A DNA stretch of 30,996 nt. It comes from Fonticula alba ATCC 38817 (lineage: Eukaryota > Protista > Nucleariida). The first letter of the stretch is position 1. Every line of letters begins with the position of its first letter. A program made the translations under genes and the position numbers. The notes under the pieces are model-generated. The model made no database searches, was not told where the DNA came from, and worked only from the letters and a program-made list of their open reading frames with translations. Positions 24,015-30,996 of the stretch are shown piece by piece. The DNA is taken from NCBI GenBank assembly GCA_000388065.2, contig KB932201.1; one strand, written 5' to 3'.

Positions 24015-27000
24015 CTACTGACGCGACTTCGAGGCACCCCCGGCCATGGTGGTAGACAGGGAGGCGGGCAGCCGGTGAGAGGGGGGCTCGGCGCCAGGGC
24101 CAGAAGAGGCAGTGGCGGCCGGGCCGGGCCCGGGGCCGGAGGCTGTCAGTGGCTCGGGCGTGGCAAGCGATCGCCGATTGAAGCGGATCCCGCCGGCCGA
24201 GGGGATGGGGCCGCTGGTGCTGAGGGCAGGGGGCAGGGCCACGGGTACACCGGCTGTTTGGGCGGACACCGGCCGAGTGGTCGGCCGGGCAGTCGCGGAG
24301 GCCGGTGGCATGGGCGGTGGCGGAGGCTGGTCTCGGTCACCCGTGGCTGGGGGAAGGGGCGGCGAGCCTGGATGCTGGGGGGGGTTGGTGGCCTGGGGGC
24401 CGGTGCTGCCGGGAGGGGGGTGAGGCCGGCGCTCGCCCGGGAAGTAGAGTGGCCGAATCCGGGCAAGAATGTCCTCGCGCATGCGTGCCGGGGTGGCGGC
24501 CGCCCCCACGTTGAAGCTGATGCTGGGCGACACGCAGGGGAGGATCTGCTCAATGGCCAAGTAGTGGGTCTCTGCACGGTGCCAGGGAGATGCGTTGTCA
24601 GAAGGGGGCCAAAGGCGGGTCGGAGGACGGGGCGGAGGAGGCGATAAAAAAGCGCGCGTGCGCGCGAGAAAGGGAGGGGCAGAGAGAGAGGGAGGCAGAG
24701 GGAGGCAGAGGGAGGCAGAGGGAGGCAGAGAGAGAGGGAGGCGGAGAGAGAGGGAGGCGGAGAGAGGCAGAGAGAGAGAGAGAGAGAGGCAGAGAGAGAC
24801 AAGGAGGATGCGCCAACGTACCGGAGCCCGTGATGTTGTCAAAGGCAGCCATGTCGAAGCGGGGAACCAGGGAAGTGACAATTTGGATGCACGCAAGTAG
24901 AACATAGACAGGGTGGAACTTCAACACAATCGGGGTGGTATAGCTGCGTATGCCAGGGATGGGGGGGGAGGAGGGACCGTGAGAAGGGTGCAGGACAGAG
25001 AGAGGCAGGGAGAGGGACGGGGAAAGGGGGCCGCGGCTCCCTCTGCTTCTCGGCGTCCGGGAGAACAGCGCGGGAAGGACCAAGCAGGCAGGTGCACGTC
25101 AGGCGGCTGGGGCTTGGGCGCACGTCTTCATCAGCAGGCGCTGGGTCGAGCGGTAGACGTAGTCGTAAACCCGCATGTCGTTGCCGGGAGAAATGGCCTG
25201 CAGGTGGTCCTTCAAGTGAGAAAGGAGGAACGAAAGGTCATGGTACGGGGTGTAGACGTCAAAGTTGAAGGCCAGCACATCGGACAGGAGGATGGTCTCG
25301 CAGCGGACGATTCCCTTGAAGATGTCCTGCAGCATGGCGCGGATCTTGCGCACGGCCGGCGGATCGGCGGGGGTGCTGGTGCCGGCGCCGGCGCCGGTGC
25401 CGCTGGCGCCACTGCCGCTGCCGCTGCCGCTGCCACTGGCCGAATGGCCATTGATGGTCGCTCCCATGCCCCCGGCCCCCCCCGGGGGGGACCTCGTTCC
25501 GCCAGTGAGGTCGGCCGTGCTGGAGGAGGCGGACACCGGGCGCGAGGGACGCTGGAGCCGACTGGCCGGGGGGGAGGGGCCCGGGCCGCCGGGCCGAGGG
25601 GCGCGACCAGCCGGGTCCCCGCCCGCCGGGCCAGCTGAGGAGGATGCCCGGCTGGAGGGTGGGGGGGGATCGATTTTCAAGATTTCACGGCAATAACAAT
25701 CGATGATGTGATTGGACCGACGGCTGGGCTCGTCGGCCGCCTTGGCCGCGACAAAGAGACACGCCAGGGCGATGTGCTCCGGGGCTGACTCCTTCAGGGA
25801 GAAGGAGGCCAAAAACCGGTGGAAGAATGTGAGGGCGGTTGTGACGGTTTGAATGTTGCTGTGTGTGTGTGTGTACGGGGGGGATCCGAAGGGGGATGGT
25901 CAGGTGGGGCATGGGGATCGTCATGTGTGGGCGAGGGGGGAGGAGGGGCGGGAGGGGAAAGAAGAGACACGCACTAGCCGAGCTTGTCGGCGACCGTGTA
26001 GATATGCTGACAGGAGGAGTCCCGAAGCACGTCGATCCGCTCCTTGGGAAGGGACGCGAGCGAGGGGCATTGGGCCAGCTGCTCCTCGGTGAAGGTCCAA
26101 AAGGGCGTCCGGGTGTGGTAGGGATATTTGCGAAGGGGGAGCTGCTCGCTGTCGTGGGCGTACACAAGCAGCTCCATCACGGCCTTTTGGAAGAGGCCGA
26201 ATGGCCCGGCGGGCATATCATCCGGCCGAGGCTGGGACCCAGGGCCGGGGCTGGGCGAGCGACTGGGCGAACGGGAGCGCGACCCGGAAAAGGACCAGGC
26301 TGACAGGACACTCCGGGCTCGGTGAGGGGCCTCCTGGTGTGGGGAGGTACTACGACTACGACTGCGGCCGAGGCGGCCGAGGCGACTCCGACTGCGACTG
26401 CGACTGCGACTGCGACCGCGACTGCGACTCCGACTCCGACTGTGAGTGCGGCTACGACCGCGGCTGAAGCTACGACTGCGACTCCGACTGCGGCTGCGAC
26501 TCCGACTGCGGCTGCGGCTGCGACTGGCAGGGCGGATCCAAGGGAGGTCGCGGCCGGGCGAGATGGTGGGGGAGCGAGAGCGTGATCGTGACCGCGAAAA
26601 GGACCGCGATCGCGACCGGGAAGGGGACCGCGATCGCGACCGGGAAGGGGAACGGGACCGCGAGCGCGAGACGTCACGGCCACCGGCCCCCCCGCCAGAG
26701 GCCCAGCTGAGGGAGAAAAGCCCGCCTCCGGAGGCCGCCGATGGCCGGGCCGGACTCGGGGAGCGGGGATACTGGCGGCCGGGACGCCGGCCAGCGGCAT
26801 TCCGAACCGGCGACCGGGCATACCGCGACCGAGAGCGCGACCGGGAGCGCGACCGGGACCAGGACCGAGATCGGGACCGGGACCGAGATCGGGACCGGGG
26901 AGTTCGCGAATGTGGACGCGAGTGCTCCGGCGACCGCGACATCGACCGGTCATAGCGGCTAAGGCGCCGGCTGCTCTCCCCGTAGCGAGACAGCGACTCG

Positions 27001-27041
27001 GACCGAGGCGAGGCAGAGCCCCGATGGCGGACGTATGACAT
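24015..27041 (-). CDS. Transcription-type cyclin (cyclin T/K-like) with N-terminal RS domain and Pro-rich tail, about 826 aa; exons 27041-25975, 25858-25124, 24943-24822, 24571-24015
   Basis: Three introns with phases 2,2,1 give 2481 nt. FWTFTEEQLAQCPS resembles the cyclin T/K N-terminal W.F..eqL...PS motif. Cyclin box 1 is KLGYNIQTVTTALTFFHRF...IALACLFVAAK. Later elements are E..LL..L.F.F.V..PY and box 2 YTTPIVLKFHPVYVLLACI. A CAG acceptor directly before G-ATG (27045-27043) means an upstream exon is possible. Confidence 0.87.
24691..24730. repeat. (GGAGGCAGAG)4 decamer tandem repeat within an AG-rich tract, in cyclin intron 3
   Basis: Four exact copies, with degenerate copies extending to about 24800. 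Confidence 0.85.
26348..26900 (-). repeat. Coding hexamer repeats encoding RS dipeptide blocks
   Basis: CGCAGT/CGGAGT/CGGTCC/CGGTCG-type units at ~26348-26527, ~26574-26670 and ~26820-26900 translate to (SR)n in the cyclin frame. Confidence 0.9.
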
Positions 27042-27552
27042 CCTGCACCGGGAGGCGACTCAGGGGGATGCACGGCTAGCAGGAAGCAGCAGCACGGGGG
27101 GGGNNNNNNNNNNGGGGGGGGGGGGGGGGGCAGCCTGTGGACAGGGCAAGGCCCAGGCAGATGCTTGCCCTTCCGACTGGCGCAGTGGCACATACAGGGG
27201 AAGGGAGAGGGGAGAGGGGAAGGGAGTGCACATGCGCAGCCGGGCGGGGGCAAATGACGGCGACGACAGCAGGAGCACCGGTGGCGATGACGCTTCATGC
27301 ACCATGACCCTCCTCAGGGGGGAAGAGTCCCCCCAAGAGAGAGAGAGAGGGAGAGAAGGAGAGAGAGGGAGAGCAAGATGCACATACGCATACGCCGAAA
27401 GAGCGCAAGGAGCAAGAGAGCGACACGAGGAGAGGAAGAGGCGGAGAGAAGGGCAGAAGAAACGGCGTCGAGAGGGGAAGGGGAAAGGAGAGTGGAGGAC
27501 CCTCGGAGGAAAGCCCGAGAGAGAGAGAGGGGGGAGGGGGGGGGGGGGATGA

Positions 27553-29457
27553 TCAGCACGCACTCAGGGCCTGGAGGGCGGCGCGAGTGGACTCGCGGCG
27601 AGCGCGACGGGCGGCCATGCGGGCCTCGTAGTCGGACATGTCTTCGGTGGCGGAGGGGGCACTCGGGGAGCTAGGCGGCGACTCGGCAGGGGGCGGAGTG
27701 GCGGCGGCGACGGCGGCGGCGGCGGGGGGGGCGACGGTGATGGCGGGCTCGACGTCGGTGATGTCGAAGCTGATGGCACAGGCGTTGACGAAGCTGGGCT
27801 GCTCGGTGGTGGGGGCGGCAGCGGGCTCGGCGGCGATCGGGGTCTCTTCCGGCAGGCAGGAAGAAGAAGCAGGGGCGGTGTTCACACGAAGGGGCGCGGC
27901 AGAGGGGGAGGATGAAACTGCGGTCTCGGAGGCACAGAGGGCCGGACTGTCGAAAACCGGCGACGTCGGCATGGCAGAGGAGGGAGGCGACAGGGCGTCA
28001 GTGACCGGGGCAATGGCAGCAGGACCCGAAGAGACGGTGACAGGGACGATGGCTGGCTGGGCGGCGGAAGGGCCGGCGGCCGGGCGCGCCCCCTCCGGCT
28101 GGTAGCCAGGCGAGGCAATCAGCGGAGGGGTCGCGGTCAGGGCCAGCAAGTCGGACGACGGGCCAGGGGCGCCGCCGCCGACCGGCGCGGCCGTCACCGG
28201 CGGTTGGACACACTGGATGCTAATGGCGCTGCTGGCCGACAGGCAGGGCTGGCTGGTCGAGCTGCCCCCGCCGGGGGCCGCGGCCCCCGGGCCGGAGCTC
28301 AGCGACAACTGCGAAGAGGATGCAGTCGACGCCCGGCGCCCGGCCAAATGCAAGTTCTCCGTGGAGGTGGCGCGGCTGCCGCCGGCCGCCGCCTGCGGAT
28401 CCAGCAGGAACTGGCTGTAATCGCCCTTGGTGCGAGGCGGGGCGATGCTGGCCCGGCGGTCGCCGCCATTGCCCCCGGTCGGGCCGGAGAAGGAACCCCC
28501 CCGACCGGAGGAGGCCCGCGGCGTGGGCGTCGAAATCGAGGAGTACGTCGATCCGCCGGTCACGCCGGGGACCGCGGCACTGGCCACCGCGGCGAAGGCC
28601 GCCGCCGCGGCCGACGCCAAAGCCTGGCTCGGCCGGCGCTTCATCGAGGCCGAGTCCTTGGATGGCCCGGCGCTGCCGGCGGCCTGGCCGCTGTTGGCCG
28701 GCACCGCGTCCGGCAAATTCGTGAAGGAGCTGTGCACCGAACGCGCATGGTGATCATGCGACATGCGCCGGAGCGAGGCCCCCCGGCGCAGGGCCCCCGG
28801 CGGCGGGGTCCCAATGTCACCCAGGTCGAAGTTCGCGTCGAGCCCCCCACCGCCGGCGGCATCCAAATGCGAGGACGACTGCCGCCGCATGGAGAGCGAC
28901 GACGAGCCGGAGATGCTGATCGTGCTCTTGCGACGCATCGACAGCTTCCGGCCGACAAGGTGCGACACGGAGTGCCGGCGCCCGGCCGACCGCGCGTCGG
29001 CGTCCGCCGTCGGCGAGGGCGGCCCCGTCACGGCGGTCGTGCGCGGGACCGTGCGCCCCGCGCCATGGGCACCCCCGCCACCGGGCCGCTCGGCACTCAG
29101 CGACAGCGAGGATGCCGAAGACCCGGGCCCGGGCGCATCGCCACTCGACCCGGTGGCCCCCAGCCCCGGCGAGAGGGGCATGGTCGCCACCGAGCCCGAG
29201 GGCGAGAGCGCCCCCTCGGCCGACGACGGGCCCGGACTACCGCCAAAGGAGGGGCCGGGGCTGCCGATGGCCTTGGCGCCGCCGCCATCTGACCCCGGGG
29301 CCAAGTCGGCCGCCGGGGGGCCGCTGCCGGCGTGGTCACTGCCACGCCGCGACCCGGTGTCTCCGGGACCGGCATCGGCACCCTCGGCCGACTGCTGCTC
29401 CGGGCGCCGACGCGTCATCCGGCGCACGAGGTTCGACATGCGGCTTCCAAGGCCCAT
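27553..29457 (-). CDS. Hypothetical intrinsically disordered Ser/Gly/Ala/Pro-rich protein, about 634 aa, with many RRxS motifs and a C-terminal charged helix; the 3' end may be spliced
   Basis: A 1905-nt open frame from ATG 29457 (MGLGSRMSNLVRRMTRRR) with G/C-rich third positions, preceded on the coding strand by pyrimidine-rich non-coding-like sequence. It ends DMSDYEARMAARRARRESTRAALQAL. No globular domain was recognised. Confidence 0.72.
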   Translation of the reverse strand: MGLGSRMSNLVRRMTRRRPEQQSAEGADAGPGDTGSRRGSDHAGSGPPAADLAPGSDGGGAKAIGSPGPSFGGSPGPSSAEGALSPSGSVATMPLSPGLGATGSSGDAPGPGSSASSLSLSAERPGGGGAHGAGRTVPRTTAVTGPPSPTADADARSAGRRHSVSHLVGRKLSMRRKSTISISGSSSLSMRRQSSSHLDAAGGGGLDANFDLGDIGTPPPGALRRGASLRRMSHDHHARSVHSSFTNLPDAVPANSGQAAGSAGPSKDSASMKRRPSQALASAAAAAFAAVASAAVPGVTGGSTYSSISTPTPRASSGRGGSFSGPTGGNGGDRRASIAPPRTKGDYSQFLLDPQAAAGGSRATSTENLHLAGRRASTASSSQLSLSSGPGAAAPGGGSSTSQPCLSASSAISIQCVQPPVTAAPVGGGAPGPSSDLLALTATPPLIASPGYQPEGARPAAGPSAAQPAIVPVTVSSGPAAIAPVTDALSPPSSAMPTSPVFDSPALCASETAVSSSPSAAPLRVNTAPASSSCLPEETPIAAEPAAAPTTEQPSFVNACAISFDITDVEPAITVAPPAAAAVAAATPPPAESPPSSPSAPSATEDMSDYEARMAARRARRESTRAALQALSAC

Positions 29458-29806
29458 GGCTGCGGTGCTGCTACTGCTGGATGGCAAGGAGAAAGAAGAG
29501 GGGGGACTCCGAAAGGGAAGGCCGGAGACGGATGGCCGAGGGGACGGAAGGGAAGCCGCCTCGAGAAAGAGAGAGGAAGGGCAAGAGAGGGAGGGGAACG
29601 GAACAACTGGCAAGGAAGGCAGGGAAGTGGGAGAGGAGCGGATGGAAAGAAGGACAGAGAAGGGGGGATGCACTTTGCAAAGATTGGCCCGGGGCTGCGA
29701 AAATGCCGCCACGGTGCCATAAGAACATGCGGCACTGACCGCCGCCCGGGGAGAGGAGGGCCTACATTGCTGGATGTTCCTGGCCGACATGCATCGGGCT
29801 GGCGAT

Positions 29807-29851
<45 letters not shown>

Positions 29852-30073
29852 GCCCCCCCCCCCCCCCCCCCCCNNNNNNNNNNNNNNNNNNNNNNNNNNN
29901 NNNNNNNNNNNNNNNNNNNNNNNNNNNNNNNNNNNNNNNNNNNNNNNNNNNNNNNNNNNNNNNNNNNNNNNNNNNNNNNNNNNNNNNNNNNNNNNNNNNN
30001 NNNNNNNNNNNNNNNNNNNNNNNNNNNNNNNNNNNNNNNNNNNNNNNNNNNNNNNNNNNNNNNNNNNNNNNNN

Positions 30074-30168
30074 GTCCAAAGGCACGGGCATGCGAGCACC
30101 CTCCCAGGGGGGGGGGCCGACATGCCCCTCCCCGAGGGAGCGCGCGAACGCAAGACACACAGACAGCC
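30074..30168 (+). repeat. 95-bp dispersed duplicate, copy 2 (identical to 20356-20450)
   Basis: Exact match, starting immediately after the 200-N gap. Confidence 0.9.
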
Positions 30169-30996
30169 GCGCACGCCCAGGGAGCCAACTGTCTCTCCCA
30201 GACACTCAGATTGGTCTGCCCGGTTGTCACCGGCCGCGCCGATCGAAGGGGAAGCGGAATGCGCACCCGGGCCCAGCCCCCACCCCCGGACGTGGCACCA
30301 TCAAAGACGCCAGGCGTCCGCCGCTCGCCTCCCGGCAACCCCCCTGAGCCTCCCCCCGGCCCTGGCCCTGGCTCCCTCCTCCAAAGGAGGGGAGGGAGAG
30401 AGAAACAAAAAATAACCACATATACAGACACCGGCGCGGCACAAGGAGAGGGGCAGAAGAAGGGAGGAGGAGGAATGACACGCACACTCGGACTCATCGT
30501 CTGCTCACAGGGAAGGGGGGACATAGCGAGGGGGCACGCCGAAACACAGGCACCATAGGACACATGCAGACAGACACACACACACAAACGCAGAGACACA
30601 CGCCGCGCATGCACGCACGCGAGAGGGGCAAATGAGCAGGGGGGCAGATCGCCAAAGAGGGGATGGGGAACACACGCGTCAGCCACCAGGGAAGAGAGGT
30701 CAAAACATGTGCAGAGTGCGCGCAGAGGCACGCGCGTGTGCACATTCGCGCGCTGCATCATAGGATGAGTGTGTTCATTCTTGCTCGTTCGCTCTCTCTC
30801 TCTCTCGCTCGCTCTCTCTCTCTCTCTCGCTGGATCCCCGCTCTTCCTGGTGCCTCTAGTGAGATGGCGTTCCGGCGCGGCGCGCAGAGCGCCCCCCGGC
30901 CCTCCCCCTGCCCAGGAGAGTCAAAGACCCGCCGAGGGCAGGGGAGGCAAAGGCGCGAACTCATGCGCGCCGGGCCACCAAGGAGACGGGGAGGGG

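Follow-up and report, generated by a model that had tools for sequence, protein, structure and literature searches.

A candidate N-terminal RS domain on a T/K-type cyclin of the amoeba Fonticula alba

Cyclin K proteins known so far have only a few tens of residues ahead of the tryptophan (W) of their N-terminal motif and, to our knowledge, none has an arginine-serine (RS) domain; likewise, we know of no cyclin T with such a domain. In animals and plants, it is cyclin L that carries one, at its C-terminus. Here we describe a gene in the genome of Fonticula alba ATCC 38817, an amoeba, located in a 30,996-nucleotide (nt) stretch of contig KB932201.1 (the window, to whose positions all coordinates refer unless a genome contig is named), in which a cyclin of the T/K group appears to be preceded, in the same exon and frame, by a long RS domain. 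In human cyclin K, two N-terminal cyclin boxes are followed by a C-terminal Pro-rich region, and human CDK12 and CDK13, which hold 20 and 17 RS motifs respectively, are found in nuclear speckles (PMC3348076). Cyclin L, which carries an RS domain, has been connected with splicing (Dickinson et al. 2002, cited in both PMC3348076 and PMC13324802). Our own search of the full-text literature, whose coverage is incomplete, returned no description of a cyclin with an N-terminal RS domain.

The gene, as read from the window DNA, lies on the minus strand, comprises about 826 codons in four exons and runs from 27041 to 24015 (Table 1), exactly the interval delimited in an earlier note that had been drawn up from the letters alone. 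We give a probability of about 0.5 to the following reading: the gene is real, its product of about 826 residues is a T/K cyclin leaning towards cyclin K, and translation starts at the ATG at 27041, so that the protein begins with an RS domain of about 260 residues. Such a protein would be an architectural variant, with known parts in a new order, and this variant is probably real, in a lineage that has no sequenced close relative.

The RS-rich exon and the cyclin region

All three introns show canonical GT..AG ends, and translation of the single exons indicates that the reading frame is kept over each junction; at intron 1, both the frame and the helix pattern carry on across the splice sites (KLG-Y-NIQT). 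The RS blocks share exon and frame with the cyclin motif, as the earlier note had proposed, since one stop-free frame extends from 27041 to 25975, and the motif tryptophan, which it had placed at about residue 315, is indeed residue 315. The first in-frame stop upstream of exon 1 is a TGA at 27062, 21 nt before the ATG at 27041, and no ATG is present between this start and a 10-N gap (27101-27110). A purine occupies position -3 at the ATG at 27041 as well as at the two internal in-frame ATGs, Met276 and Met289. The G+C content of the window is about 70%.

Table 1. Positions of the features of the cyclin gene in the window, and of the cyclin-dependent kinase (CDK) genes found elsewhere in the genome
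Feature	Position	Strand	Description
Exon 1	25975..27041	minus	ATG at 27041; 355 codons plus 2 nt; RS domain, short linker, cyclin N-terminal part
RS domain	26259..27005	minus	Residues 13-261; 109 RS/SR dipeptides
SR blocks with TCN serine codons	26897-26862, 26858-26823, 26597-26574	minus	First three blocks
SR blocks with AGY serine codons	26525-26472, 26441-26418, 26414-26385	minus	Last three blocks
Internal in-frame ATGs	26177..26216	minus	Met276 at 26216, Met289 at 26177
Cyclin N-terminal motif PFWTFTEEQLAQCPS (W315)	26061..26105	minus	Followed by the predicted first box helix, to the exon end
Intron 1	25859..25974	minus	GTGCGT...CAG, phase 2; donor GT at 25974-25973
Exon 2	25124..25858	minus	Cyclin box 1 (helices 2-5), then putative start of the second fold
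Low-complexity insert in box 1	25363..25671	minus	Lies between helices 3 and 4; about 105 residues, rich in Pro/Ser/Gly/Ala and with a (GS)n run
Intron 2	24944..25123	minus	GTGCGC...CAG, phase 2
Exon 3	24822..24943	minus	40 codons; would provide the second cyclin fold's first helices
Intron 3	24572..24821	minus	GTACGT...CAG, phase 1; CT-rich repeat including 24743-24806
Exon 4	24015..24571	minus	About 45 residues perhaps finishing the second fold, then Pro-rich tail of about 140 residues; stop at 24017-24015
CDK1			PSTAIRE motif
Further CDKs of cell-cycle (PSTAIRE/CDK5-like) type			By motif reading
CDK7-like			By motif reading
CDK8-like	Genome contig 190		Tiny unplaced contig of 1133 bases; SQSACREI, VVVTIWYRAPELLLG
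CDK9-like	Genome contig 7, ~909,000-912,200	plus	RVVTLGYRPPELLLG..DYGP.IDLW
CDK11/10-like			By motif reading
CDK12/13-like	Genome contig 4		Best PDB matches CDK13/CDK12, 99 bits, against 77 for CDK9

Over residues 1-275, serine accounts for 32% and arginine for 28% of the composition (60% together), and the long region of consecutive RS/SR dipeptides that defines the RS-domain (SR-related) proteins is present. It includes six uninterrupted (SR)4-9 blocks, 8 to 18 residues long each, in the exon-1 frame. Three of these blocks write serine with TCN codons and the other three with AGY codons; TCN-CGN and AGY-CGN are unrelated DNA repeats, and both read Ser-Arg only in the frame of the cyclin. This convergence of two repeat units argues for selection on the Ser-Arg product. 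No Pfam family besides Cyclin_N was matched by any exon, so the RNA recognition motif typical of the classical SR splicing factors was not seen in this gene.

Every search, profile score and fold prediction on the cyclin gene was made with single exons. On these, the first cyclin box is real. Indeed, exon 2 matches the Pfam family Cyclin_N (PF00134) with 24.8 bits (cut-off 23, E 1.9e-5), and the cyclins of the PDB with 21.4 bits for L2, 19.5 for T1, 18.9 for C, 18.6 for K and 12 for cyclin H; the Pfam and PDB matches cover residues 1-57 of the exon and no more, and neither the exon-1 tail nor any of exons 2b, 3 and 4, each taken alone, gave one. Of the 30 named clusters nearest to the exon in an Atlas feature search, 22 are Cyclin_N clusters. 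Against a profile built from T/K-like relatives, exon 2a scored 47.5 bits (columns 68-122) and exon 2b 12.7 bits (columns 134-179), in collinear order, and neither score was reached by any of 300 shuffles. The insert that splits the box is absent from all 24 aligned relatives. In an AlphaFold model of exon 2 alone (mean predicted local distance difference test score, pLDDT, 64.6), helices are predicted with a pLDDT of about 90 at exon residues 1-40 and 170-195, and the insert is predicted to be unstructured (pLDDT below 55). The Foldseek comparison of this model with the PDB returned only cyclins or TFIIB, none of them significant and without resolution of the family.

The flanking parts of the cyclin region are less sharply defined. 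The motif in exon 1 matched the W..F..E.L N-terminal profile of the relatives weakly (5.9 bits, a score reached by none of 500 shuffles), and was not significant in other comparisons. The earlier note had read two cyclin folds and a Pro-rich tail; the first box stands, as does the tail, which is plain in the translation of exon 4, and the second fold, spread over the end of exon 2, exon 3 and the start of exon 4, is plausible at its expected place, where the alignment is collinear without reaching significance. Exon 3 aligns at the profile position expected for this fold (LCLQF..IA.ACVY) with an E of only 0.1, and exon 4 gave no family or profile match.

Assignment within the T/K group and candidate partner kinases

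An exhaustive search of 1.84 billion representative proteins found no close relative of this cyclin and returned six weak matches, the best with an E of 2.8e-5 and none from the F. alba genome; a word-indexed homologue search with exon 2 gave no match. Four of the six nearest library proteins were tested, and for all four the best match in the PDB is cyclin K, which leads the next family by 10-24 bits. One of the nearest relatives belongs to a diatom family which its sources name 'cyclin T', yet this relative matches cyclin K best in the PDB, which indicates that T and K separate poorly outside animals and fungi. This diatom family and a small protist family were all that our searches for T, K, L and C references provided. 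From these library neighbours, and from the layout of cyclin boxes followed by a Pro-rich region, we would place the window gene in the T/K group, leaning towards cyclin K. In the relatives that were fetched, a set from which the length filter of the search would exclude long forms, the corresponding W motif is found no more than about 25 residues from the start; within that set, the statement of the earlier note that T/K cyclins begin close to this motif is borne out.

Some observations weigh against the reading proposed above, on the side of the identity of the cyclin as well as on that of its start. The most serious competing explanation concerns the first of these: the same RS-cyclin protein would be the cyclin T equivalent of F. 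alba, and would pair, in a complex like P-TEFb, with the CDK9-like kinase and not with the CDK12/13-like one. The direct PDB scores of exon 2 are nearly the same for T1 and K (19.5 against 18.6 bits), and the name of the diatom family points the same way in spite of its K best match. Moreover, the genome does contain a CDK9-like kinase (Table 1), and a single T/K-type cyclin gene was found for the two kinases, so that either kinase may be the partner. Against this explanation stand the tested library proteins, all of which favor cyclin K, and the C-terminal tail, whose Pro-rich character corresponds to the layout described for cyclin K. We consider it unlikely that the gene is a cyclin T equivalent, though no other alternative has a better claim. 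The count of one T/K cyclin comes from six-frame, exon-by-exon searches of the genome, which are insensitive and found neither a second T/K cyclin nor a cyclin C; the Pfam families CycT2-like_C and Cyclin_C_2 had no six-frame match in the genome, and the controls were equally silent.

The kinases were identified by a kinase-exon search combined with motif reading. A PITAIRE-type pattern had no match in the genome; a looser one and the pattern WYR[AP]PE retrieved some of the CDKs. In the CDK9-like kinase, a Gly replaces the usual Trp of the TLWYRPPELLLG motif, and a long acidic, Pro-rich insert separates this motif from the DLG/DFG motif. The CDK12/13-like kinase ends in a long Gln-rich C-terminal tail. 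Ahead of its kinase domain, about 250 residues are visible up to an assembly gap; they are Pro/Gly/Ala-rich and RS-free. The gap, a 2390-nt N run (genome contig 4, ~679,144-681,533), lies directly upstream of this visible N-terminal part. A six-frame scan for RS-dense windows detected none in the 9-10 kb around the cyclin L, CDK11/10-like, CDK9-like and CDK12/13-like genes, the last with the 2390-nt gap upstream of it. The earlier note had suggested checking whether the CDK12/13 orthologue lacks an RS domain; this is so for the visible 10 kb, but the front of the gene is hidden in the N run; because of this gap, the CDK12/13-like kinase may still possess an RS domain.

RS tracts of this kind are not confined to the window. 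The other loci sampled, about 160 kb in all, yielded a single long RS tract of comparable mixed-codon make-up, at the N-terminus of a CWC22-like splicing-factor gene, which suggests that RS domains appear in this organism on splicing-related proteins, as they do in animals. The CWC22-like gene is situated downstream of the CDK7-like gene, some 2 kb away, on the minus strand of genome contig 8 (~1,606,066-1,607,148, or L043:2067-3149, with exons continuing to about L043:924); its first exon is the RS part, and its later exons are MIF4G-like, by reading only. A wider proposal is that, in F. alba, the RS module of the elongation complex, the kinase that phosphorylates Ser2 in RNA polymerase II's C-terminal domain (CTD), is carried by the cyclin and not by the kinase, and that it is the sole RS domain in the set of CDKs and cyclins devoted to transcription and splicing. 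This we regard as a tentative proposal, and a rather doubtful one.

Start of translation and origin of the repeats

Next in order among the alternatives, and also unlikely, is the possibility that the RS stretch lies outside the main protein. Transcription would then begin downstream of it, or translation at Met276 or Met289, or the RS form would be a minor isoform, and the repeats would belong to a microsatellite-rich leader that is open by chance. Met276 and Met289 are situated 39 and 26 residues before W315, which is the usual spacing of T/K cyclins, and each could start a canonical short cyclin without an RS domain. Open frames come cheaply at 70% G+C, and a second frame of the same strand, as well as one of the opposite strand, are likewise open across the repeats, which makes the open frame in itself weak evidence. 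The G+C content by codon position gives no clear coding signature for the RS part (0.60/0.84/0.71), whereas it is typical of coding DNA in the cyclin part of exon 1 (0.64/0.41/0.85), with flanking non-coding DNA at about 0.63-0.65 at all three positions; for the non-repeat N-terminal segments, this measure fails to tell coding from non-coding. In the repeats, AGT outnumbers AGC (21 against 12), as expected of slippage and not of codon selection, and this excess shows that the RS tracts also grow by slippage. Finally, the libraries hold no orthologue in which conservation of the RS domain could be seen.

A further point on the same side is that the genome as a whole abounds in hexamer microsatellites, among them (ACACGC)n, (TGGCGG)n and (AGCCGC)n, so that many genes can be expected to contain low-complexity coding tracts derived from repeats. 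A loose (WSN-CGN)x6 pattern had about 700 matches in the genome, as many as its reversed-pattern control, and is swamped by the ACACGC and TGGCGG microsatellites, which makes it unusable as a count of RS tracts.

Several lines of evidence speak, indirectly, against a downstream start. A leader open by chance sits poorly with two repeat units that converge on Ser-Arg in the cyclin frame only, with a frame that opens with an ATG just after a stop and has no ATG upstream of it, and with the finding that the one comparable mixed-codon tract in about 160 kb belongs to a splicing factor. The composition of sequencing reads points in the same direction. Of the 31-letter words sampled from 24015-27400, four runs from 2012, whose RNA nature is a guess, contain shares of 0.74, 0.74, 0.73 and 0.65, which do not say which of the words are present, nor whether the RS and cyclin parts are continuous with each other. 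The share expected for a spliced mRNA from the ATG at 27041 is 0.71 with the coding exons only, and 0.73 with a leader reaching up to the N run; it is 0.47 for a transcript starting just upstream of Met276, 0.92 for unspliced RNA and 1.00 for genomic DNA. The observed shares are, indirectly, in keeping with a spliced transcript in which the RS part is included, and not with one that starts after it.

We keep to the start at 27041, and the protein would most likely be translated from that ATG and open with a disordered RS domain. The earlier note had proposed a transfer of the RS module from kinase to cyclin, or else an independent gain. Nothing shows that the module moved, and it is simpler to suppose that repeat expansion produced it independently: the tract most likely arose in this lineage through expansion of hexamer repeats and was then kept at the protein level.

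A third explanation, which we regard as improbable, is that the gene is a divergent cyclin L paralogue, or the missing cyclin C, and that its RS part is a relocated cyclin L domain. The best single PDB match of exon 2 is indeed cyclin L2 and cyclin C scores close by, and no cyclin C gene was found in a genome that has a CDK8-like kinase. However, these score gaps are within noise and the nearest library proteins are K-like. In addition, a clear cyclin L orthologue occupies another locus, on the minus strand of genome contig 4 (~2,782,510-2,785,683), with a TAQVLLQRYYY box and PDB scores of 35.7 bits for L2, 34.4 for L1 and 25.9 for T1; a separate cyclin H orthologue, with cyclin H as its best PDB match, lies on genome contig 3. 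The window gene is thus not the cyclin L orthologue, which closes one route by which the earlier note could have failed, and its assignment there to the transcription-type cyclins of the T/K group, and not to cyclin L, agrees with these separate loci. The RS domain of the window gene is N-terminal and its C-terminus Pro-rich, neither of which is the cyclin L arrangement. As for cyclin C, the motif region of exon 1 begins with the W..F..E.L..PS pattern, which we take to be of the T/K/L kind and not of the cyclin C kind. At the cyclin L locus itself, the last visible open frame ends without an RS region, and no RS-dense window was seen within 9 kb.

The remaining explanation, that the repeats belong to a plus-strand Arg-Asp/Arg-Glu repeat gene (26446..26955) or result from an assembly artefact beside the 10-N gap, can be dismissed as very improbable: the plus strand is open for 169 codons over the repeats and the gap is only 60 nt upstream of the ATG, but the plus-strand frame lacks an ATG start, a domain beside it and partner exons, the neighboring large open frames are on the minus strand, and the gap falls outside the open frame, with an in-frame stop between it and the ATG.

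The upstream neighbor of the cyclin gene is an 873-codon open frame on the minus strand (27553-30174), rich in Ser, Ala, Pro and Gly, with no obvious domain and with a run of N inside it; it ends 510 nt ahead of the cyclin ATG. A fusion of the cyclin with this gene was considered and rejected, given the end of the upstream frame at 27553 and the in-frame stop at 27062.

Proposed role and comparison with known systems

If the protein is made as we propose, its RS part and its cyclin box could be given the following roles. The RS part would be a phosphorylated docking region, by analogy with what is established for CDK12/13, cyclin L and the SR splicing factors (PMC3348076), and would bring the cyclin-kinase pair to splicing factors or to speckles. 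The cyclin box would switch on a kinase acting on the RNA polymerase II tail, for which a CDK12/13-like kinase is the likeliest candidate and a CDK9-like one is a candidate too. In this way, CTD phosphorylation might be coupled to splicing, as the earlier note had suggested.

In animals, transcription kinases are linked to splicing by RS domains, by way of CDK12/13 and cyclin L. A T/K cyclin with an RS domain of its own in a unicellular relative of the fungi would show that this link is older, or more easily re-evolved, than has been supposed, and that the subunit bearing the RS tag is interchangeable. If the wider proposal is true, the use of RS domains to bring a CTD kinase to the splicing machinery is no animal invention: either subunit could perform this function, whether re-invented or shuffled between them. 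The RS-cyclin would also offer a simple natural test case for the role of RS domains in bringing a kinase complex to splicing sites. It is no new kind of system, and gains of low-complexity sequence are common, so that its value is moderate.

The comparison with the described systems can be summarized as follows. The window gene resembles cyclin K, the partner of CDK12 and CDK13 (Ctk2 in yeast), in its transcription-type box, in the K-like character of its nearest relatives and in the presence of a CDK12/13-like kinase in the genome; it differs from cyclin K in the roughly 260 RS residues that precede the motif, in the insert of about 105 residues that splits box 1, and in its strong divergence. 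With cyclin T, the partner of CDK9 in P-TEFb (Bur2 in yeast, Pch1 in S. pombe), it shares the same type of box, direct scores on a par with those of cyclin K and a CDK9-like kinase in the genome, but it differs from cyclin T by its RS domain and by nearest relatives that score better with cyclin K. Cyclin L is likewise an RS-bearing cyclin, in which the RS domain is C-terminal, whereas it is N-terminal in the window gene. CDK12 and CDK13 are comparable in that one subunit of a CTD-kinase complex has an RS-rich N-terminal region; in their case the kinase carries it, and in Fonticula the cyclin would.

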